A stretch of DNA of 64,000 nucleotides from Anaeramoeba ignava BMAN (lineage: Eukaryota > Protista > Anaeramoebae). Both the position numbers and the translations under genes were made by a program. Where the stretch lies: assembly GCA_028826165.1 (NCBI GenBank), contig JAPDFW010000055.1, forward strand, positions 310,001 through 374,000, read 5' to 3'. This document shows, piece by piece, positions 406-42,402 of the stretch (the first letter of the stretch is position 1; each line of letters opens with the position of its first letter). The notes beneath the pieces were generated by a model. The model was not told the DNA's origin and did not search any database. It worked only from the letters and a program-made list of their open reading frames with translations.

Positions 406-3400
406 TTATTTCTTCAATTTTTTTAAATTATCAAATAATAAAGAATTTTCATTCATTTGATAATATTCAATAAAATTTTCCAATTCATTAATTATTTCAG
501 AACTCAATGATTCATCCAATTTATCAAAATAAAGAAACTTCAAAAAACTTGATATTGCATCGCTTGAACTACCAAGATAATCAGAAACACTATTTGATTT
601 ATCATCCACAGAAAGAAACATTCCACGAAATAAACCAGTTCTTGCAAAAAGTATAAACTTATGAACTTTAAATTTTTTTTCTTCAACAACAATTACAAAA
701 TCCTTTGTTTCATCTTCAAAATACAATTCTTGTAAATTTGGAATAACACCATTTCTTCCTTTATTTCTTTTAATCCAATCTTTTGCCAATCCAAGTTCTT
801 TTACCTGTTCTTTCAAAATTCCTCTATTTTTTTCTTCAATAATTCCCGAATAAAGAAAACTAAAAAATATTTTTGCCAGTTCAACTTTTTTAAATTTGAA
901 AAAGTTTATTATTCGAAATAATTCTTGAACACCGCCAATTTTTTTCTGAATTAAACATTGAATAATCCCAATTTTCCCATCAGAGCATTGAATAGTAAGG
1001 TCTGTGAGTTCTTGTTGTTCGAAAAGGTTTTTCATTTCTTCCAATATGCATTTTTGTTGTAGAAATAATTTATGGATCTCTGGATTAGTAGTTAAATTAA
1101 TTGGAAGTAAGCCCTAAATATTGAATCAAGAGTATTTATATTTTAAATATTTTAAATATTTTTATATTTTTTGAGAATTAATTTACTTTCTAAATTTGAT
1201 TATTTAAAATTAATGTTGTTTAAAAAATTTTCATTTCATTTTTTTCTTTACCTTTGTTCTTGCTAAAAAATCTGCTCCTAATTCTATTAAAAGATGAACA
1301 ATTTTTGGATCATTTTTATATTGGCAAGCACAATGCAAAGGAGTAAGTTTCTATCAATAATTTTAAAGTATTTTAATAAGTTTTGCAAAAGGAAAAGAAA
1401 TATTTTTTTTGTTCTTCTTTTTTTTTGTTTACCCACTTTAATTTATTAATCAAAAAAAATGGAATAAATTTGGAATGAATTACCAATTATGGAATAATTA
1501 TTACTCCCTATTAATAAATCAAATAAATTCTCAATTAATCTATATATGAATAATTTGAAATGAATTTGAGATTAACAGTTTTTGCATGAATATTTGCTCC
1601 ATTTTCAATTAAAAGTTTTACAACTTCAAATCCTGATTTATAAATGCATGCATAATGCAATGGAGTATTGTTCTTAAATAGATTTAAATAAATAATAATA
1701 ATAATAATTCACTTAAATATTTTAATTTGTCTTTTATTTATTTTGATAAATTAAAATACATACTAAAAAAATTATTTATAAAAATTCAACAAATTTTTAA
1801 TCAAATATTTAATTAAATTTTTAATCAAATTTTTAATCAAATTTTTAATTAAATTTTTAATCAAATTTTTAATCAATTTTTAATTAAATTTTTAATTAAA
1901 TATTTAATCAAATTTTTAATTAAATTTTTAATCAAATTTTTAATCAAATTTTTAATCAAATTTTTAATTAAATATTTAATCAAATTTTTAATAAATTTTT
2001 AATCAAATTTTTAATCAAATTTTTAATCAAATTTTTAATCAAATTTTTAATCAAATTTTTAATCAAATTTTTAATCAAATTTTTAATCAAATTTTTAATC
2101 AAATTTTTAATCAAATTTTTAATCAAATTTTTAATCAAATTTTTAATAAATTTTTAATCAAATTTTTAATTAAATTTTTAATCAAATTTATAATCAAATT
2201 TTTAATCAAATTTTTAATCAAATATTTACTTTCTAAATTAAATTAAATTAAATTAAATTAAAAATTTGATTTGAGGAAATTTTGAGGTTTATTCACAGCT
2301 GGTAAATTAATTTCCGCACCTGCTTCAATAAACAATTTAATTATTTTTGGTGAAGCTTGATGTATACATGCAAAATGAAAAGGTGTATAATTCTTAAAAT
2401 GATATTTAGTTTTTTTTTTGGATATTTAGAAAAAAAAATTTTTTAAATTTACGAACTATTTTGGGATTTTTTTTAACAGGGAATAAAAATGGTATTTTAT
2501 TTTTGAATTTTTACATCCTAAAATTTAATTTTTGAATATAAAATATAAATATAAATATTAAATATTGAATATTGAATATTGAATATAAATATTGGATATT
2601 AAATATTAAATATTGAATATTGAATATTGAATATTGAATATTGAATATTGGATATTAAATATTAAATATTGAATATTGGATATTGAATATTAAATATTAA
2701 ATATTAAATATTGAATATTGGATATTGAATATTGAATATTAAATATTAATATTGAATATTAAATATTGGATATTGGATATTAGATATTAAATATTGGATA
2801 TTGAATATTTGATATTGGATATTAAATATTAAATATGAATATTGGATATTAAATATAAATATTAAATATTGAATATTGAATATAAATATTGAATATTGGA
2901 TATTGGATATTAAATATTAAATATTGGATATTAATTTTTGAATATTGAATATTGAATATTGGATATTGGATATTAAATATTAAATATTAAATATTAAATA
3001 TTGAATATTGGATATTGAATATGCAATTTTTACACTCTAAAATTTAATTTTTGAATATTGAATATTGATTTTGATTTTGAATATTGATTTTGATTTTGAT
3101 TTTGATTTTGATTTTGATTTTGATGATTTTGATTTTGATTTTGATTTTGATTTTGATTTTGATTTTGATTTTGATTTTGATTTTGGATTTGAATTTGATA
3201 TTGAATATTGATTTTGAATTTGATTTTGATTTTGAATATTGATTTTGATTTTGATTTTGATTTTGATTTTTAATTTTGATTTTGATTTTGATTTTGATTT
3301 TGATTTTGATTTTGATTTTGAATTTTGATTTTGATTTTGAATTTGATTTTGATTTTGATTTTGATTTTGATTTTGATTTTGATTTTGATTTTGATTTGAT

Positions 3401-4253
3401 TTTGATTTTGATTTTTGATTTTGATTTTGATTTTGATTTTGAATATTGTTTTGATATTGATTTAGATTTTGATTTTGGATTTTGATTTTTGATTTTGATT
3501 TTGATTTTGATTTTGAATTTGAATTTGATTTTGATTTTGATTTTGAATTTGAATTGGATATTGATATTGATTTTGATTTTGATTTTGATTTTGATTTTGA
3601 TTTGAATTTTTTTTGATTTTTGAATTTTGATTTTTACCATTTTAATATTCACATCTGCACCTTTCAGAATTAGAAATGCAGAAATATCATCACTAGAATA
3701 ACCCTCCATTGCATAATGAAGAGGAGAATAACCCTAAATTAAAACAAAATTCCAAATTTAAAAAAAATTTCAAATTTAATTTCAAAAAAAAAATTTACTA
3801 ACTTTTAAATCCAAAAAAAACAACATTTTAGAACATTTCAAAAAAAAAGAAATTCAATAAATTGATTACTGGCTAAAAAAAAAGCAGATGAGTATTATTT
3901 CTAATGAATAAAATTGATTTTAATTTTGAAAATATTTTACTGATTTTTCATTTATATCTGCTCCTTTTTCAACAAGTAATTTTACAATATCAAGATTTGT
4001 ATGAAATAATATTGCTGCATGTAATGGAGATAAACCCTGTTTTTGTTTCGTTTTTTTTTCCTTATTTTAATTTTTCATTCAATTTTTTTTTGTTTTTTCT
4101 TTTACTAACTAAATTTAATTTTTTTTTTAAAATTTTTTTTTTTTTTTTTATTTGATAATTTACAGATCTAGTTCGTAAAGATTCAGTTTCAAGTGCTTCT
4201 AAAACACCTTCATAATTATTTTCTTCAATTTTTTTAAATAACAAAGAAGACAT
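406..4253 (-). CDS. Ankyrin-repeat + BTB/POZ protein A, 18 exons including 11 single-codon microexons
   Basis: Exons in transcript order: 4253-4164; [4108-4106 L]; 4036-3941; [3872-3870 P][3801-3799 L]; 3733-3638; [3036-3034 S][2517-2515 D][2455-2453 F]; 2392-2297; [2232-2230 K][1762-1760 Y]; 1672-1577; [1507-1505 G][1435-1433 W]; 1350-1252; [1189-1187 K]; 1113-406. All introns GT-AG, phase 0. Main exons read [40 protein letters not shown]. The last exon carries BTB ([29 protein letters not shown]). Confidence 0.85.
1790..2222. repeat. Intronic 12-nt satellite (TTTTTAATCAAA)n
   Basis: Visible tandem array between microexons K (2230) and Y (1760). Confidence 0.9.
2540..3630. repeat. Intronic satellites (AATATTG)n-like and (GATTTT)n
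   Basis: Two arrays separated by the Ser microexon cassette at 3030-3060. Confidence 0.85.
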
Positions 4254-4284
4254 TTTGAGGAAAAAAATGAAAAATTTTAATCCA

Positions 4285-5765
4285 ACTTATAATAAAAATT
4301 AAAATAAAACTTAAAATAAAAATTATAATAAAAATTATTAATAAAAATTATAATAAAAATTGGAATAAAACTTATAATAAAAATTGGAATAAAAATTATA
4401 ATAAAACTTATAATAAAAATTAGAATAAAAATTATAATAAAAATTATAATAAAAATTATAATAAAAATTATAATAATAAAAAAATTATAATAAAAATTAT
4501 AATAAAAATTATAATAAAAACTTAGAATAAAAATTATAATAAAAATTATAATAAAAATTATAATAAAAATTATAATAAAAATTATAATAAAAATTATAAT
4601 AAAAATTGGAATAAAAATTAAAATAAAAAATGTAATAAAAATTATAATAAAAATTAAAAATAAAAATGGAATAAAAATTAGAATAAAAATTAAAATAAAA
4701 ATTATAATAAAAATTATAATAAAAAATTAAAATAAAAATTATAATAAAAATTGGAATAAAAATTATAATAAAAATTGAATAAAAATTGAATAAAAAAGTG
4801 GAATAAAAATTGGAATAAAAATTAAAAATAAAAATTGAAATAAAAATTATAATAAAAATTGTAATAAAAATTATAATAAAAATTGAATAAAAATTATAAT
4901 AAAAATTATAATAAAAATGAAAAAATTATAATAAAAATTATAATAAAAAGTGGAATAAAAATTATAATAAAAATTATAATAAAAATTGGAATAAAAATTG
5001 GAATAAAAATTGGAATAAAAATTATAATAAAAATTATAATAAAAATTATAAAAATAAAAAAATAATAAAAATTATATAATAAAAATTATAATAAAAATTA
5101 TAATAAAAATTTATAATAAAAATTAAAATAAAAATTAAAATAAAAATTATAATAAAAATTATAATAAAAATTATAATAAAAATTATAATAAAAATTATAA
5201 TAAAATTCTCTATAATAAAAAATTGAATAAAAATTAAAATAAAAAGTGGAATAAAAATTAAAATAAAAATTATAATAAAAATTGGAATAAAAAATTATAA
5301 TAAAAATTGAATAAAAATTGGAATAAAAATTTAATAATAAAAATTGAATAAAAATTATAATAAAAATTATAATAAAAATTATAATAAAAATTATAATAAA
5401 AATTGGAATAAAAATTATAATAAAAATTGAATAAAAATTATAATAAAAATTAATAATAAAAATTATAATAAAAAGTGGAATAAAAATTATAATAAAAATT
5501 ATAATAAAAATTATAATAAAAATTGGAATAATAATTATAATAAAAATAGGAATAAAAATTAAAATAAAAATTATTTATAAAATTATTAATAAAAATTATA
5601 ATAAAAATTGGAATAAAATTATAATAAAAATTGGAATAAAAATTATAATAAAAATTAGAATAAAAATTATAATAAAAATTATAATAAAAATTAAAATAAA
5701 AATTATAATAAAAATTATAATAAAAATTAAAATAAAAATTATAATAAAAATTATAATAAAAATTG
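4285..5765. repeat. Intergenic 12-nt satellite (ATAATAAAAATT)n
   Basis: Degenerate tandem array. Confidence 0.9.
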
Positions 5766-5811
5766 TAATAAATTTTTGGGAATTTTTGAAATTTTATTTT
5801 AAAAAGAAAAA

Positions 5812-6704
5812 TCAAAGAATTTTTGATAACCAATTCAAAACATCATCAATAACTTGTTCTGAAATTCCATGAGGGAGATTTTTATAAACATTAAATTTGA
5901 CGTCAAGATCATTTGCTTGAAGAAATTTTGCGGATCTTTCAGCCCAATTAAGAGGAATTAAAGAATCAGAATCACCATGACAAATAATAAAAGGAGTTTC
6001 TTTATTATTTTCAAGAATTTCTTGAGGTTTTTCTTTGGAAACTGGAACAAAACAACTTAAACCAATAACGCCATCCAATTTGACTTTTGTTAAAAATAAC
6101 GCTGTATATAAAGCAATTACTCCTCCTTGTGAAAATCCTCCTATTATTATCTTCTTTGACTTTGACACTTCTTCCTCAATTAATTTGTTTAAAATTTCAG
6201 ATGACTTTTTGATTCCATCATCGTCTCTTTTTGATGTTTCAGAAAACCCGTAAATGTCAAACCATGCTGGCATTTCCATCCCCATATTAGCTGTCACTGC
6301 CCGAGTTGGTGCTGTTGGTAATATTACTTTGGTTTTAGGAAATTTTTCGGTAATTATGTTAGCTACATCAACCCATCCTTTTCCAGTATCTAAATATTTA
6401 AAAATTAATATTAAATTTAAAATTAAATTTAAAATTAAAAATCAAATTTAAAATTAAAATTAAAATTAAAATTAAAATTAAAATTAAAATTAAAATTAAA
6501 TTTAAAATTAAATTTAAAATTAAAATTAAAATTAAAATCAAAATTAAATTTAAATTTAAAATTAAAATTAAATTTAAAATTAAAATTAAAATTAAAATCA
6601 AATTTAAAATTAAATTTAAAATTAAACTAACCGCCAAGACCATGAAGAATAAATATTGTAGAATCTGCTTTTTCTTTGTTTTCAATTGTAATTGGAGAAG
6701 ACAT
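5812..6704 (-). CDS. Acyl-protein thioesterase / lysophospholipase (APT1/LYPLA family)
   Basis: Exons 6704-6632 and 6389-5812; motifs ILHGLGDTG, PTAP, MPAWFDI, GGFSQGG, HGDSD, H in LPHG. Confidence 0.9.
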
Positions 6705-8381: not shown

Positions 8382-11300
8382 TTATTTCTTGGAAAGTAAA
8401 TCATTGAAATTGGAATTCATATTGAATTGATAATACTCAAAAGCTTCAGATAACTTTTCTTTTACTTGAGGACTAACTTCTTCTGGTAATTCATCAGTGT
8501 ATAAATAATAAAGTAAAGTTTGCAAAGACTCTTGAGAATTTTGAGAATAATCTGAAACTTGATTTGAATCATCTTCAACACTTTGAAACATTCCTGAAAA
8601 TAAACCAGAGCGAATCATAAGAATAATCTTATGAACTTTAATAGGTTTTTCCTCACAAATAATTGAGAAATCTTTTGTACTTTCATCTTCCATTAATTTT
8701 TTATAATCTTTTGATAATCCAAATCTTCCTAATTTTTGCTTCCAATTTTCTAATCCAATTTTTTTAGCTGTTTCTTCAATAAATTCTCGGTTTTTAAGTT
8801 CAGCTTTGCCAGAATAAACAAAATTAAGAAAAATATCGATATTTTTGGATTCTTCTTGATGGAAAATTTCAACCAATTTATCTGCTGATTCTTTTCCTAA
8901 TCGAGCATTTAAAATTAAACTATGAACTTTCACATTCGAATCAATGCATTGAATTTCAATATCAGTAACAAGTTTCTTCTTTAAAAATTCATCAAAATCA
9001 TTTTGATAACTTGTCCATTTTTCAAGATCTTCTGTTTTAACTTCAAGAGTTCTATAACCTCCATAATACTAATTAAATGGGAATTCAAGAAAAAATAATA
9101 TTTTTTTTTTGATTGTGTTTTTTCTTTTCTTATTCTTTTTGAAAATTTACAGTATCACTAGGTACATATTCATAATCAACTCCATAATAAACTAATTGTT
9201 CAGCAAGTTCTTTTTTTGTATATTTTGCCAAATAATACGGAGTTTGACTCTTGATTTTTTTTTTGATATTAATTATATTTATTTATTTATTATTTTAATT
9301 TGAATTTAAATTTGAATTTACAGACTAAAAATTAGAAAATTAACAAAATTAAATCTAATTTATATTTCAAAACAAAAAATCATTTTGCTTTTTACTTTCT
9401 AATTAATTTTATTTTCTAAATAAATAGTTTTTTTTTTATTTTCAAAATTCTTCAAATTTACATTAATTGTATCAAGATCATATCCATGTTTTGCAAAGAA
9501 AGGAACTACTAAAGGATTAGTTTTTTTTTCTTGGAAAAAAGAGTGAAAAGATAATGCCTAAAAAAAAAGCAAATAAATTTTTGGTTTCTTTTTTTTCTTT
9601 TTTTTTGGAATTATTAAAGATAAACTACATATTCATCAACTGCAAGAGCTGCCTTTAAATCTGCTCCTTTCTCAATAAAAAAATCAGCAACATCAAATAA
9701 ATTGTTTCTTAAAGCATATTCCAAAACTGAATGATTCTTTTGATAATTTAAAAAAAAAAGAATAAATTATAAGATCTTTTCTCTGAAAAATTTTATGTTT
9801 AAATTTTTTTTTAAAAAAAGAATACATTCTAAAAAAATAAAATTATTAAATGAATATAAGCTAATAATTATACAAATAAAAAATAATCTAATTTTTTACA
9901 TTCTAATAAATAATAAAAATATTTATAAATAAATCAATAGATTTAATAATTTTTTTTTTCAAAATACATTTTTGCAATTTAGATCACTTCCTTTATCAAT
10001 AAGAAATTTAACAACATCCAAAGAACAACTACCTATAACAGAAAGTAATAGTGGATTATCTCCCTAATAAAAATATTTAAATTAAAATATTAAATTTTTT
10101 TTCTTGACATTTTTTTCTTGAAATTTTTTTACTCCCTAAAAAAAAAAAGATTAAAATTGATTATGAAAAGAATTATTTTTTTTCTTAGAATAAAAAAGAT
10201 AATACTCTCTAAAAAAAAAAGTAAAATTAATCATTTCATTCTTTTTTTTTTTTCTTTATAATTATTTTTTTACAGTAATTTTATTAATTTCTGCTTTAGA
10301 ATTTATAAGAAACTCAATTGTTTGCAATTCATATTTATTTAAACAAGCATTCAATAAAGGAGTGTAATTCTAATTTTTACAAAGAATATTTAAAATAAGA
10401 TTATATGCTTTTTTTAATTGATTTTCATTAAACTTTGAATAAAAATAAATTACAGCCTAATTTTGATTTAATTTTAATTTAATTTTAATTTTAATTTAAT
10501 TTAATTTTAATTTTAATTTAATTTTGATTTAATTTTGATTTAATTTTAATTTAATTTTGATTTAATTTTGATTTAATTTTAATTTAATTTTGATTTAATT
10601 TTAATTTAATTTTAATTTAATTTTGATTTAATTTTGATTTAATTTTGATTTAATTTTGATTTAATTTTGATTTAATTTTGATTTAATTTTAATTTAATTT
10701 TAATTTAATTTTGATTTAATTTTAATTTAATTTTGATTTAATTTTGATTTAATTTTAATTTAATTTTGATTTAATTTTAATTTAATTTAATTTTAATTTA
10801 ATTTTAATTTTAATTTAATTTTGATTTAATTTTGATTTAATTTTGATTTTAATTTTGATTTAATTTTGATTTAATTTTGATTTAATTTTAATTTAATTTT
10901 GATTTAATTTTGATTTAATTTTAATTTTAATTTAATTTTGATTTAATTTTGATTTAATTTTGATTTAATTTTAATTTAATTTTGATTTAATTTTAATTTA
11001 ATTTTGATTTAATTTTAATTTTGATTTAATTTTGATTTAATTTTGATTTAATTTTAATTTAATTTTAATTTAATTTAATTTAATTTTAATTTAATTTAAT
11101 TTAATTTTATTTTGATTGTCTTATAAAAAATTACATCCTTTTTTCAAATTGGAATTAAATTATTTTGTTTTGTTTTCTTCTTCTTTTTTTTTTATAAATT
11201 AAATATTTACATCAGCAGAATTAATATCAGCACCAGATTCAACAAGTAATTTAATAACATCAAAACCTAATCTTTCTTCAAGTGCTAAATTTAATGGACT

Positions 11301-12189
11301 CACATCCTTATTTAAATTGAAAAAAAAACAAAGAATAATTTTAATTGAAAAGAAAATTTTATAAAAAAAAATTTACTCTCTTTTTTTTTTATTAAAATTA
11401 ATTTTGTTAATAATAATAATTAATAAATAAAGAAACGAATAAAAGAATTTACAATCTAATAATAAAATATAATAATTTGAATATTTGTTTTCAATTTGTT
11501 TTTTTAAATAAAAATTGTTTTTTTACTGATAATTCATTAACTTTTGCTCCGTTTTTTAAAAGAAATTCAATAATTTCTCGATCTCGATGTTTATGAATTG
11601 CAAGATGTAAAGGAGTAAAATACTAATTAGAATTAAATTTAATTTAATTTATTTTTAATTTAATTTTTGATTTAAATTTAAAAATTTAAAAAATAAATAC
11701 ATCCTAAAAAAAAAAGAAAGAAATTAATAAAATAAAATGAAAAAGAAAATGATTTAAATTCTACATTCTATTTTTAAAAAAAGAAAATAAATTTTTTAAT
11801 CATTTTAAAAAAGAAAAAAAAAATCCAAAAATAAATAATTTTTACATAAGTTTTTAAATTTGGATCTGCTCCTTGTTTTATTAACTTTTTTAAAACATCT
11901 AAACCCTTGTTTTCACTAATTGCTAAATGAAGTGCAGTGTTTCCCTTTTTATATTTTGATTATTTTCAATATAAAAAAATGAGAACTTTGATTATAAAAA
12001 AAAAAATTTACAAACTAAATAAAAAATTATTAATTAAAAAAAAAATTTCAATTTGGGAATAATTAAGTAAATTACTTCCTATTTTATTTTATAAGAAAAG
12101 AAAAATACAAAAAAAAAATTTAATTTAAATAATTCAAATATAAAAAATATATAAAAAAAACTCACGTTTTGTGAATTAATTTTCGACAT
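8382..12189 (-). CDS. Ankyrin-repeat + BTB/POZ protein B, 24 exons including 14 single-codon microexons
   Basis: Exons: 12189-12166 (MSKINSQN); [12078-76 E][12014-12 F]; 11944-11846; [11767-65 N][11703-01 D]; 11622-11527; [11455-53 I][11379-77 R]; 11306-11211; [11137-35 D][10456-54 A]; 10369-10274; [10208-06 R][10135-33 G]; 10063-9968; [9902-00 N][9828-26 N]; 9736-9629; 9557-9462; [9398-96 K][9324-22 S]; 9249-9151; 9068-8382 (tandem BTB). All GT-AG, phase 0. Confidence 0.87.
10459..11115. repeat. Intronic 11-nt satellite (ATTTAATTTTG/A)n
   Basis: Fills the 678-nt intron between microexons D (11135) and A (10454). Confidence 0.9.
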
Positions 12190-15625: not shown

Positions 15626-15826
15626 TTTAATTTTAATTTTAATTTTAATTTTAATTTTAATTTAATTTTAAATTTAATTTTAATTTTAATTTTAATTTTA
15701 ATTTTAATTTTATTTTAAAAACCTTTTTTGTTTTTTACATTTTAAATAAAAAGATCTTTTTAATTTTTAAAAAGTTTTTCATTTTTTTTTCATTTATTTT
15801 TTTTTTATTTCCAAGTGTGTATAAAA

Positions 15827-18729
15827 ATGAATCAAAATAAACCGAATGAAGAAATAGACTTCTGGGAAGCAGTTGAGAAAAACAACATTATACAACTAAA
15901 GAAGCATAAAAAGCAATTAATTTTACAGAAAAACAACTCAAATCAAACACTTCTTCATTTTGCATGTATCAAAAGAGCCAAAATTGAAATTCTCAAACTT
16001 TTAATCAAGAAAATCAACGTAAATGCGAAGGACTTGTTCAACAAAACAGCACTGCATTATGCGTGCGAAAAAAAGCCAACAAAACCCATATTGACTTTAC
16101 TAGTCAAACAAGGAGCAAATGTGAATGCAGAGGATAACGAGCGCCACTTGCCTCTACACATTATATGCACAAGAAAACGCATAACGGACAAAGAACTCGC
16201 GCTCGTCATCTCACCTGAAACAAACATTAATGCGCAGGACAAGGACCATAAGACTCCACTTCATTACGCCTGCGAATACAAACTTCGTTGGGAAATTGTC
16301 GACCAATTAATAAAAAGGGGAGCAAAAATCGATTTGCCAGATGTCTCTGTCAGACTGCCTTTGCATTTTTGTTGTCAAAATGGATCCGACTTGCAGATCA
16401 TTGATATTTTGACAAAGACACCCGAAGCTATCAATGCCAAAGACGCGCTGGGAAGATCGCCTTTGCATTTGGCTTCTATTTACGGGATGAGTTACGAGGC
16501 CACAAAGCTTCTAATCGAAAGAGGAGCGGTTGTCAATGCCAAAGATGCTGCCAAGAAAACAGCACTTCATTATGAATGTGAATTTGGCAACCGCAAAAAT
16601 GTTATTGAGCTTTTTTTGGAAAAGGGAGCTGTCCCGAATCCAAAAGATGGAAACGGAATGACCCCCTTAATTATTCTTTTTGAGAAGCGTGAATTGTCGG
16701 ATACCCCCAGAATCCTTATTGAAAACGGTGCTGATCTTTTTGCACAAGATCAAAATTCGCTTAATTGCCTTCATCATGCTTGTCGAAATAAAATCCAACC
16801 GCAAATTTTGAACATGATCATCGAAAAGGGGATCGATGTCAACTCTCCAGACGCTCTTGGAAAAACCCCTCTCCATCATATTTGCGAGACTTATCCTGAG
16901 CCTGAGGCTCTGAAATTGCTTATTCAAAAAGGCGCAAATGTCAACAGCCAAGATGCCCATTTGCAGACGCCTCTTCATTATCTTTGCCTCTCTTCCTCCT
17001 CACGAGAGTTGTTCACCATTCTTCTCGATTCGGGCGCTGATCTCTCGCTTGCTGATTCCAAAAAAGAAACCCCTCTTCATTATTCTTGCAAAAAATCGGG
17101 AAGTAAACCGATACTCGAGCTGTTTCTGACCTACCAAGGCGACATCTATTCCACCGACCAGGACAACAAAACCCTTTTGCACGTTGCTTGTGAGTACGGC
17201 ATCGATATCGACACAATGGATTTTCTTATTCTTCAGGGAATTTCGATCGATGCTCGCGATAAAAAAAATCAAACTCCTTTGCATTATGCTTGTCAACACA
17301 ATGGAGATCTTAGTTTCAAAACAATCCAGTTTCTTTTTGAGCGCGGAGCCAAGATCAACACCCAGGATCTTGACGGAAAAACGCCTTTGCATTGTGTTTG
17401 CGAGCAAAATCCCAATTTCGAAATTGTTAGTTTTTTGATCCAAAATAACGCCGATATTAACATCAAAACGAATGAGAATAAATTTCCGTTGCATTTCGCT
17501 TGTGAGAAATCTGCACATGCAAACGTTCTCAACTTATTGACAAACGCAGAAACCATGAACGCGCTTGATAGCAATCACCAAACACCATTGACATATGCCT
17601 GCATTGCGCGTGCCGAGCTCGATGTGTTCCAGTTTCTGGTACAGAAAGGAGCGGATGTGAACACAAAGAATTTCTATCATCATTCACCATTGCACTTCTT
17701 GTGTCTCAACAGAGCAAGTATCGAGATTGTCCAGCTTTTTATTAAATCGGGAGCAAATGTGGAACAAAAAGATCATTATTTAAGATCCCCTCTTCATTTT
17801 GCCTGCAAAAATAACGGTGACCAAAAAGTCATCAATTTTTTAATCCAATCCGGCGCAAATATTCATTCCAAGGATTATTACAATAAAACCCCTCTTTGCT
17901 ATGCTGCCGAGAACGTAGATTTTGACATTGTGCGTCTTCTACTTTCTTACGACTCGACTCTTTACGGACTTGATTTCGACTCACTTGATCCAAAAATCAG
18001 CAAATTGATCCAAACTCACTACTCCGTGATTGCTGATTTCCAGAACCTTCTCTCTTCCAACCTCCAGACAAACATCACATGCAAGTGCAAAAATGGGATA
18101 ATTTCCCTTCATTCTCACATTCTTCATTGCCGTTTTTGTGATCTTTCTTTGCCAAATAACGAGCTTGTTTTTGAGACAATAAAATCCAAGTTGGATCTTG
18201 TTTGCAATCAGCACAGTATCGAAGAAGCAACTGATTTTTTCATGTTTGTCTATTCCGGTTTTGTTGATCTCTATAACCCTGAAAAGGGTGTTAAAGCAGT
18301 TTCTCAATTTGTGAATCAACTTGGTTTTGACAGCTCATGGATTAACCGCAAAAAAGGTCGAAAAAATCTGCTTAAAGATTTGAATCTTTTGTATTTGGAC
18401 ACAAATTCAATGGATTTTGAAATTGTTGTTGGTGGAGATGAGGTTATGGCTCATAAAGCCGTTCTTCTTGCTCGATCCAATTTTACCGTTCAATGTTTGG
18501 ATCACTTTCAAAAAATCAACGTTTTGATGTTGTTGATGATTCAACTGGCAAATCTTTAAAAACTTTGACTGAACTTGTTCAATTCTTTTATTTGGACCAA
18601 ATTTCTTCTGATCTTTCAAATCAAACTCTTTATGAATTGGCTGATGTAAAAGATATTTTTCAATTAAATATGTTCTCTAATCTTAGTTATCAACTTGAAG
18701 AATTTCATTTTTTCAATAAGAAAAAGTAA
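15827..18729 (+). CDS. Intronless ankyrin-repeat (about 20 repeats of 34 aa) + BTB protein; one frameshift near 18483
   Basis: ORF 15815-18559 (ATG at 15827) continues in ORF 18493-18729. One extra T in the T run at 18481-18484 restores ARSNFYRSMF (BTB). Visibly higher GC than neighbouring genes. Confidence 0.88.
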
Positions 18730-42330: not shown

Positions 42331-42402
42331 GTTAGTGTAGCTCAGAGGGAGAGCAATCGACTGCAGATCGATAGGTCATGGGTTCAAATCCCGTCACTAA
42401 CA
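42331..42402 (+). tRNA. tRNA-Cys (GCA)
   Basis: Cloverleaf: GTTAGTG/CACTAAC acceptor, GCTC/GAGC D stem, ATCGA-CTGCAGA-TCGAT anticodon arm, ATGGG-TTCAAAT-CCCGT T arm. Confidence 0.93.

Follow-up and report, generated by a model that had tools for sequence, protein, structure and literature searches.

Probable constitutive single-codon exons at the inter-repeat loops of an ankyrin-BTB gene of Anaeramoeba ignava

Gene A of Anaeramoeba ignava BMAN is an ankyrin-BTB gene located on the minus strand at positions 406-4253 of the window, that is, of the whole stretch of 64,000 nucleotides that was analysed. Its large exons, five ankyrin exons of 96-99 nt and one BTB exon, together with a first exon encoding an N-terminal cap, are separated by six gaps. 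Exon 1 (4164..4253, with the ATG at 4253-4251) codes for 30 aa, identical to residues 1-30 of the public model P0003. Ankyrin repeats 1 to 5 are encoded by one exon each: exon 2 (3941..4036, 96 nt, GLSPLH...INEKS; Pfam Ank 2.9e-08, model positions 2-31 of 33), exon 3 (3638..3733, 96 nt), exon 4 (2297..2392, 96 nt), exon 5 (1577..1672, 96 nt) and exon 6 (1252..1350, 99 nt), all of them passing the Pfam Ank profile PF00023 (24.1-38.6 bits vs a gathering cut-off of 21.1). Exon 7 (406..1113, stop at 406-408) encodes a linker and the BTB/POZ region, 235 aa in all, and matches the Pfam BTB profile PF00651 (4.4e-13; 49.8 bits vs a cut-off of 20.5). The public name of the gene, INK4 / CDKN2C, is a by-similarity label. 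Members of this family are small proteins with nothing but 4-5 ankyrin repeats, and the 235-aa C-terminal BTB region rules out such an identity for gene A. From its domain architecture, the product is a possible Cul3 substrate adaptor, in which the ankyrin domain would recruit the substrates.

The six gaps, amounting to 2.57 kb, contain 11 cassettes of the form AG-NNN-GTA and no other AG-NNN-GT site; the AG acceptor and the GTA donor are intact in 11/11, and none of the codons is a stop. Following the minus strand, the first gap holds TTA (Leu, 4106-4108), flanked by introns of 55 and 69 nt. The second contains CCA (Pro, 3870-3872) and TTA (Leu, 3799-3801), coding for beta-turn positions 2 and 3, respectively, among introns of 68, 68 and 65 nt. 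In the third, AGT (Ser, 3034-3036), GAT (Asp, 2515-2517) and TTC (Phe, 2453-2455) are preceded by introns of 601, 516 and 59 nt, the Phe cassette being followed by one of 60 nt. AAA (Lys, 2230-2232) and TAT (Tyr, 1760-1762) are found in the fourth gap (64, 467 and 87 nt), GGA (Gly, 1505-1507) and TGG (Trp, 1433-1435) in the fifth (69, 69 and 82 nt), and AAA (Lys, 1187-1189) in the sixth (62 and 73 nt). Thus, the sub-introns measure 55-87 nt except for three that are expanded by satellites, as detected with TRF: a 6-nt satellite of 94 copies between exon 3 and the Ser cassette (3065..3634), a satellite with a 7-nt period between the Ser and Asp cassettes (2532..3087), and a 12-nt satellite of 36.8 copies between the Lys and Tyr cassettes (1790..2228). 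The original prediction had described these 11 cassettes, the range of intron lengths with its three exceptions and the junction peptides INEKS-PL-GYSPLH, INLPA-KY-NNTPLH and IHAKT-GW-KLTPLH, and all of this was found to be correct; an example of a predicted loop-spanning peptide is INEKSPLGYSPLH. Elsewhere in the window, sites of the AG-NNN-GT type are scattered and mostly lie within exons.

The Ser and Asp cassettes have identical flanks (22 + 9 nt): this gap owes its third cassette to the recent duplication, in place, of an acceptor-codon-donor unit, the Asp cassette being the copy. As a general origin, recent tandem duplication was rejected, since cassette flanks within a gap resemble each other no more than flanks of different genes do (0.53 vs 0.51) and the Ser/Asp pair is the sole clear duplicate.

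Two or three cassettes follow the 96-nt ankyrin exons and one follows the 99-nt exon 6, the extra codon of which is offset by the single cassette downstream. The cassettes encode positions 2-3 of the beta-turn (D1-x2-x3-G4). The ankyrin exons alone span just positions 2-31 of the 33 of the Pfam Ank model, and it is only with the cassettes that the repeats of gene A attain a unit length of ~33 residues and a full beta-turn (D1-x-x-G4). In a family set of 14 genes (107 introns, 23.9 kb), the loop length shifts from k=7 (34/42) without cassettes to k=9 (29/42) with them; among relatives with contiguous loops, a loop of 9 is the family norm (54/62), and lengths of 8-10 occur. Moreover, an exon of 6 nt is already annotated at this place of the loop in one public model. 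Beta-turn positions 2-3 of ankyrin repeats are among the high-entropy, target-facing positions (PMC4308713). The residues had originally been described as typical of binding surfaces and, as judged by their position, the cassette residues would indeed belong to the ankyrin binding surface; as to the functional side of that claim, they may play a role in binding and in loop diversification.

Gene B (8385..12189, minus strand) is a sister of gene A located 4 kb from it, and the divergence attributed to the two genes is borne out by an identity of 31%. Transcript evidence for this gene is provided by the EukProt ORF P0266 (512 aa), taken as the product of an assembled transcript by its EukProt/TransDecoder-style header. 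P0266 equals the public model P0027 (498 aa) plus EF, ND, IR, DA, RG, NN and KS, and these extra residues match, 14/14 and in order, the translations of the only AG-NNN-GT sites of the gene B gaps (first bases at 12078, 12014, 11767, 11703, 11455, 11379, 11137, 10456, 10208, 10135, 9902, 9828, 9398 and 9324); gaps devoid of such sites contribute no extra residue. One cassette pair flanks a 678-nt satellite intron, and P0266 also includes the pair that follows a 99-nt exon, giving a long loop. The single-codon exons of gene B are truly spliced in, and the public model is wrong there. Structure prediction with and without the microexon residues, which had been proposed as a check, gave AlphaFold pLDDT values of 90.4 vs 88.3 for gene B, both confident and therefore non-discriminating. 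Three further ORFs were discarded as cassette tests: EukProt P0005 maps to a sister gene with a one-exon ankyrin part and is uninformative on cassettes, while confirming the removal of a satellite intron in that gene; P0133 has a likewise contiguous ankyrin part; and Logan P0153 comes from an unrelated organism.

The preferred reading is that the gene A cassettes are real, probably constitutive single-codon exons, to which a probability of about 0.85 can be assigned. Their identification as microexons, already proposed in the original prediction, is supported directly in gene B and by strong indirect evidence in gene A: sequence, family statistics and the case of gene B indicate that the cassettes are very probably included in its own mRNA. 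The product would have ~437 residues, comprising five ankyrin repeats and the BTB region; the beta-turn residues joining the repeats would lie outside the 96-99-nt exons, each forming a 3-nt exon of its own with an AG acceptor and a GTA donor. Most likely, the ordinary spliceosome would include all 11 constitutively, the units of recognition being the introns of ~70 nt (intron definition). The two introns flanking a cassette would probably be removed sequentially, an order that we infer because the acceptor and donor of the cassette are just 3 nt apart.

It seems unlikely that the cassettes, being real, are optional, so that regulated or stochastic skipping would generate many isoforms with differing beta-turn tips and the Ser cassette and the Asp cassette might exclude each other. 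All cassettes measure 3 nt and all introns of gene A are in phase 0, so the reading frame is preserved whichever cassettes are included; loops of 8-10 residues among the relatives and the recent duplication of the Ser/Asp unit, with its identical flanks, would also fit such a scheme. However, the sole transcript available holds 14/14 of the gene B cassettes, the long-loop pair included, and the protein collection contains no second isoform of this gene. Furthermore, the splice consensus is stronger, not weaker, at cassettes than at the large exons, and it is full inclusion that yields the loop length considered normal in the family.

The public model of gene A, KAJ5078048.1, omits 11/11 cassettes and joins the large exons directly and in frame. 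In intron 1 it chooses an acceptor upstream of cassette 1, with which this cassette competes, thus adding EKKTKQKQ; on BLASTP alignment with P0266, 2-residue gaps are opened at the inter-repeat loops covered. Three homologue searches of the protein collection, including a region-restricted one with 4 hits, found no transcript-derived protein of gene A, which may be weakly expressed or differently spliced. Among sequencing runs, just one, of unrecorded type, was found to contain the stretch; stranded Illumina RNA-seq of A. ignava BMAN is described in PMC11550330. Both the in-frame model and the lack of a transcript in that collection would suit cassettes that are unused relics, with whole gaps removed as single introns or with gene A silent. 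This is very improbable: for gene B, a public model of this kind has been shown to be in error, the gene A cassettes retain AG and GTA in 11/11 and are free of stops, the sub-introns are of typical size (the family median being 71 nt), the repeats would be 2 residues short if the cassettes were left out, and the exons and the BTB domain are all intact.

In the 23.9 kb of family introns, AG-N{k}-GTA occurs at k=3 in 142 sense and 0 antisense sites, shuffles leading to an expectation of 7.4 (maximum 17), and at k=0, 2, 4 and 5 in 0 sites; the spacers found are of 3 nt, plus a few of 6 nt. Stop codons are depleted in the cassettes (0/141 vs 11.8 expected, P=4.6e-6), the GC content of which is 0.20 vs 0.10 in the introns. 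Although introns of about 90% A+T and low complexity let short motifs recur, and some gaps are long, the reading of the sites as chance matches or as non-coding ratchet points of recursive splicing is refuted by the strand counts, by spacers in multiples of 3 nt only with AG|GT zero-nt sites absent, by stop codon depletion and by the codons contained in the gene B transcript ORF.

The claim, made from genes A and B, that this architecture is a family trait and not a local accident is supported. It is present at 15/20 sister loci surveyed and in 13/13 of the ANK-type sister models mapped. Genome-wide, a tandem pattern, which also matches the Pro and Phe cassettes of gene A, gave 294 hits vs 10 for a 4-nt-spacer control, relied on instead of the backward-read control, which was high (139 vs 294). 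Two BTB paralogs with non-ankyrin N-terminal exons have 0 sites in their 14 introns, and in A. flamelloides the cassettes are absent from the two relatives examined.

Several known systems share features with this one. Recursive splicing ratchet points are zero-length exons (AG|GT) that contribute no nucleotide to the mRNA and act in long introns. Like them, the A. ignava cassettes present an acceptor with a donor almost immediately behind it, an arrangement implying that the flanking intron segments are removed in steps; unlike them, they add one codon to the mRNA and are flanked by short introns, and sites with a zero spacer do not occur. In animals, isolated coding microexons of 3 nt have been described in cytohesin-1, Drosophila homothorax and MAP4K5 (PMC6314551, PMC7392893, PMC8632122). 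There too, a lone codon between canonical splice sites adds one residue with the frame kept, but these microexons are single, usually alternatively spliced and located in otherwise ordinary genes, whereas A. ignava has one to three in tandem per inter-repeat gap, 11 in gene A and hundreds to thousands genome-wide, seemingly constitutive and between very short introns. Reference annotations likewise miss, in a systematic way, the microexons of plants (1-15 nt; PMC8831610), which are stable in evolution and required to produce the correct protein, with strong donor sites flanking the smallest of them. However, they number about 100-240 per genome, in three phases and many sizes, being ancient, conserved in housekeeping genes and rarely adjacent, while those of A. 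ignava are nearly all of exactly 3 nt, in phase 0, in tandem and linked to a single structural position in one type of repeat. Finally, the micro-exon genes (MEGs) of Schistosoma, with exons mostly of 6-81 bp and typically of 15 bp, also combine many frame-preserving tiny exons that defeat automatic annotation, in a layout thought to favour variation (PMC10526429). In MEGs, most of the coding sequence lies in microexons, introns are long, and the products are secreted disordered proteins subject to alternative splicing. Gene A was rejected as a gene of this type, its microexons contributing 33 of the ~1,314 coding nt (~2.5%) and its introns measuring 55-87 nt, or ~70 nt on the whole, in a gene for a folded ANK-BTB protein; the one transcript found of a cassette-bearing gene, moreover, has everything included. 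No description of the tandem single-codon architecture of A. ignava was found in the searchable literature.

A more speculative and, at present, doubtful proposal is that the module of a single codon plus an intron of about 70 nt acts as an evolvability device for the binding loops of a huge ANK-BTB adaptor family. Residues could be added, lost or exchanged singly without breaking the frame, through duplication of units (as for Ser/Asp in gene A), through deletions or mutations of splice sites, or through regulated skipping, and substrate recognition would thereby diversify rapidly and perhaps in a combinatorial manner. If true, it would imply a spliceosome that routinely defines tandem 3-nt exons.

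Whatever their function, one-codon exons are otherwise rare curiosities and here constitute a routine building block, with, very probably, 11 in gene A and a proven 14 in gene B; the 43-Mb genome of A. ignava probably contains well over a thousand of them, nearly all in phase 0 and often in tandem between introns of ~70 nt. It is hardly plausible that a donor just 3 nt away from an acceptor could be engaged at the same time as the latter. This poses a challenge to models of how exons and introns are defined, and it means that the order of splicing can be tested directly in a natural system. In addition, in 14/14 of the cassette-bearing genes checked, each ankyrin repeat of the A. ignava public model is 2 residues short, and the missing residues would sit on the target-binding surface, which affects the structural and evolutionary use of these sequences. 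A gene architecture tied to one position of a repeat protein also prompts one to ask by what route, and for what reason, this lineage gathered introns at precisely that place.

The window is strongly AT-rich (GC ~9-25% in most 2-kb bins), and the ankyrin-BTB gene A is laid out there as seven large exons on the minus strand (406-4253). Exon 1 (4253-4164) encodes 30 aa and is followed by five Pfam ankyrin repeat exons, four of 96 nt (exon 2, 4036-3941; exon 3, 3733-3638; exon 4, 2392-2297; exon 5, 1672-1577) and one of 99 nt (exon 6, 1350-1252), and by exon 7 (1113-406, 708 nt), which carries a BTB/POZ domain (Pfam 4.4e-13). When the spliced model was searched against Pfam exon by exon, the ankyrin matches of exons 2-6 were each restricted to profile positions 2-31/33. 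With its ANK-BTB architecture, the protein may act as a Cul3-type substrate adaptor. Directly upstream of the start codon lies a 1.5-kb satellite (4270-5772; 124 copies of the 12-nt unit AAAAATTATAAT), which separates the gene from a hydrolase-like ORF (5812-6297).

The six gaps between these exons hold exactly 11 AG-NNN-GT sites, all of them with a GTA donor, and the predicted single-codon exons (cassettes) read, gap by gap, L / P,L / S,D,F / K,Y / G,W / K. The sub-introns that separate them measure 55-87 nt, with three satellite-filled exceptions of 601, 516 and 467 nt. Since sites, codons, intron sizes and satellites were all found again in the re-count, the original observation of 11 cassettes between 55-87-nt introns and three satellite-expanded ones was exact. 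The antisense strand of the gene A span contains two AG-NNN-GT sites, both within exons and one of them a stop codon. One cassette comes after the 99-nt exon 6, and two or three come after each 96-nt exon; exon plus cassettes thus amounts to 34 or 35 residues.

In the 42.8-Mb A. ignava assembly the window corresponds to C56:310001-374000. The BTB exon of gene A is 100% identical to the public A. ignava model KAJ5078048.1, whose name, 'cyclin-dependent kinase inhibitor 2c', is a by-similarity label only, since the protein consists of five ankyrin repeats plus BTB. The large exons are spliced straight to one another in this model (INEKS|GYSPLH, NIKM|NYTPFH, INLPA|NNTPLH, IHAKT|KLTPLH, ARTK|GLLPIN), and therefore all 11 cassettes are skipped. 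For intron 1 (4037-4163) it chooses an acceptor that lies 24 nt before exon 2 and brings in the low-complexity string EKKTKQKQ, the alternative in the cassette model being RTRS-L-GLSPLH.

No transcript-derived protein of gene A turned up in the protein collection searched, and a sequencing-run search with the gene A stretch found one run, of unrecorded kind. The direct evidence comes from the sister gene B, 4 kb away on the minus strand (8385-12189) and 31% identical to gene A, a value which bears out the divergence first noted between the two. The public model of gene B (P0027, 498 aa) falls in one 90% cluster with P0266, which the EukProt A. ignava set EP01156 lists as a 'complete' ORF of 512 aa, its header (a3196_37.p1) being in the style of TransDecoder. 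The two differ by EF, ND, IR, DA, RG, NN and KS, and all 14 extra residues of P0266 are the ordered translation of the sole AG-NNN-GT sites in seven gene B gaps; no residue is added at the two gaps, of 71 and 82 nt, that lack such sites. This match shows that single-codon exons are truly spliced in, all of them in the P0266 transcript, as had been proposed for such 3-nt segments. The D/A pair is separated by a 678-nt satellite intron and is included as well, so satellite-expanded introns do get removed. For a further EukProt ORF, P0005, the match to its own locus spans a satellite intron and is exact, which shows that the transcript set fits the A. ignava genome.

When the gene A public model is aligned to P0266 by BLASTP, 2-residue gaps open on the gene A side wherever an inter-repeat loop is spanned (for example, 14 protein letters against GADINSADDANYTPL), and the places of these gaps coincide with the gene A cassette locations. 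If the conserved Asp-like residue is numbered 1 and the Gly 4 (S1-P2-L3-G4-Y5-SPLH), the cassette residues occupy ankyrin positions 2 and 3. Both belong to the high-entropy set (2, 3, 5, 10 and 13) which, through beta-turn 1 and helix 1, forms one continuous binding surface (PMC4308713), and the early suggestion that the cassette residues would lie on a binding surface agrees with this placement. AlphaFold puts the cassette residues of P0266 in the loop between repeats, where 3-5 residues separate them from the first helix of the repeat that follows (pLDDT 90.4, pTM 0.81). A difference had been sought in structure predictions with and without these residues: of the two database proteins of gene B, the one without them also folds (88.3 / 0.79), and higher scores with them (ankyrin region ~95 vs ~90) were obtained, so that the modelled comparison lends the cassettes weak support.

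The trait extends over the family, as originally claimed. The counts rest on 107 introns (23.9 kb, 11% GC), obtained by mapping public models to gene A, to gene B and to 12 sister loci of the ANK type. AG-N{k}-GTA with k=3 occurs 142 times in sense, in 14 ANK-type genes, and never in antisense, against 7.4 sites (maximum 17) in shuffled introns; there are no matches at k=0, 2, 4 or 5, five at k=6, and 12 at k=1, which are by-products of AGN codons. None of 141 non-overlapping cassettes is a stop codon, where the trinucleotides of the introns would predict 11.8 (P=4.6e-6), and their GC is 0.20 vs 0.10 for the introns. The GA[DN]-to-next-TPL distance is 7 at 34 of 42 junctions in the public models, 9 at 29 of 42 when the cassettes are added, and 9 in 54 of 62 in relatives with contiguous loops, whose residue spectrum (K, N, D, S, F, Y, Q, E) resembles that of the cassettes. 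Cassettes are skipped in 13/13 ANK-type sister models. One of these proteins, KAJ5070467.1 (G000:C96:200250-207600), does include in its public model an exon of 6 nt, GATAAT (Asp-Asn), at the loop position of the cassettes; in sister genes, four further candidates of this size (RS, TG, NC, ES) are skipped by the models. Two same-family BTB genes (L026 and L034; P0013 and P0024) have N-terminal exons made of non-ankyrin repeat units of ~120 nt, and ordinary single introns, with no sites in 14 introns; the cassette design thus tracks the ankyrin repeat and not the BTB family as such.

The codons of gene B are present in mRNA, with strong splice sites and introns of the genome's usual size between them. 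Family-wide, cassette junctions exceed large-exon junctions in GTA (94% vs 82%), +4A (88% vs 66%) and -3T (70% vs 52%), and sub-introns (median 71 nt, IQR 63-79) resemble ordinary single introns (80.5). Each short intron would be recognised as a unit, and the two flanking a cassette would be removed sequentially, because its acceptor and donor lie 3 nt apart; after the first removal, the codon would belong to an exon of normal size.

As regards origin, the Ser and Asp cassettes of gene A share 22 identical nt upstream and 9 downstream, their codons differing at two of three bases, and this recent duplication accounts for the third cassette in the S,D,F gap. It is the only such pair seen; a general recent duplication was rejected, same-gap flanks being family-wide no more alike than unrelated ones. 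Conserved splice sites with variable codons had been anticipated in orthologues: two A. flamelloides relatives (P0082, P0123) keep the loops, contiguously, with several repeats per exon, two introns each and chance-level sites only, so the cassette design is not common to them. The intron totals given in the genome papers are more than 30,000 for A. ignava and A. flamelloides and only 22 for A. pumila. These papers also describe intron gain as recent and introns as 91.9% A+T; they make no mention of microexons, and no paper in the literature searched contains both 'Anaeramoeba' and 'microexon'.

Other architectures occur in the window and elsewhere in the genome. An intronless 914-aa ORF (15815-18559, plus strand; GC 41% vs ~19% for the genome) has ~25 ankyrin repeats, canonical and in an unbroken row (Ank_2 4.5e-152), and ends with a weak BTB start, an architecture opposite to that of genes A and B, which lie only a few kb from it. 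A very large intronless ANK-BTB subfamily on many contigs (86 scored loci, ~45-57% identity to the protein P0133, open frames mostly 500-2,600 aa) coexists with cassette-bearing, intron-rich members. A tRNA gene (42331-42402, plus strand; Rfam RF00005, 71 bits) explains one scattered AG-NNN-GT site outside genes A and B.

Genome-wide, a restrictive pattern of two cassettes one short intron apart gave 294 matches, vs 10 with 4-nt spacers and 139 in a backward-read control. Most pairs escape this tandem pattern, so the number of cassettes in the genome is probably well above a thousand, an estimate and not a count. At least five follow in succession at C60:118861-119143, and C61:332255-335659 (minus) and C61:392022-395412 (plus) look like an inverted duplicate pair of a gene with cassettes: indels set their introns apart, but the cassette codons are unchanged in the six matched segments. 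Single 3-nt exons are already known in animals (PMC6314551, PMC7392893, PMC8632122), plants have widely mis-annotated microexons of 1-15 nt (PMC8831610), and in schistosome MEGs the building blocks are exons of 6-81 bp (PMC10526429). What is new in A. ignava is the scale, the strict one-codon size, the phase 0, the tandem layout with very short introns in between, and the link to a single structural position.
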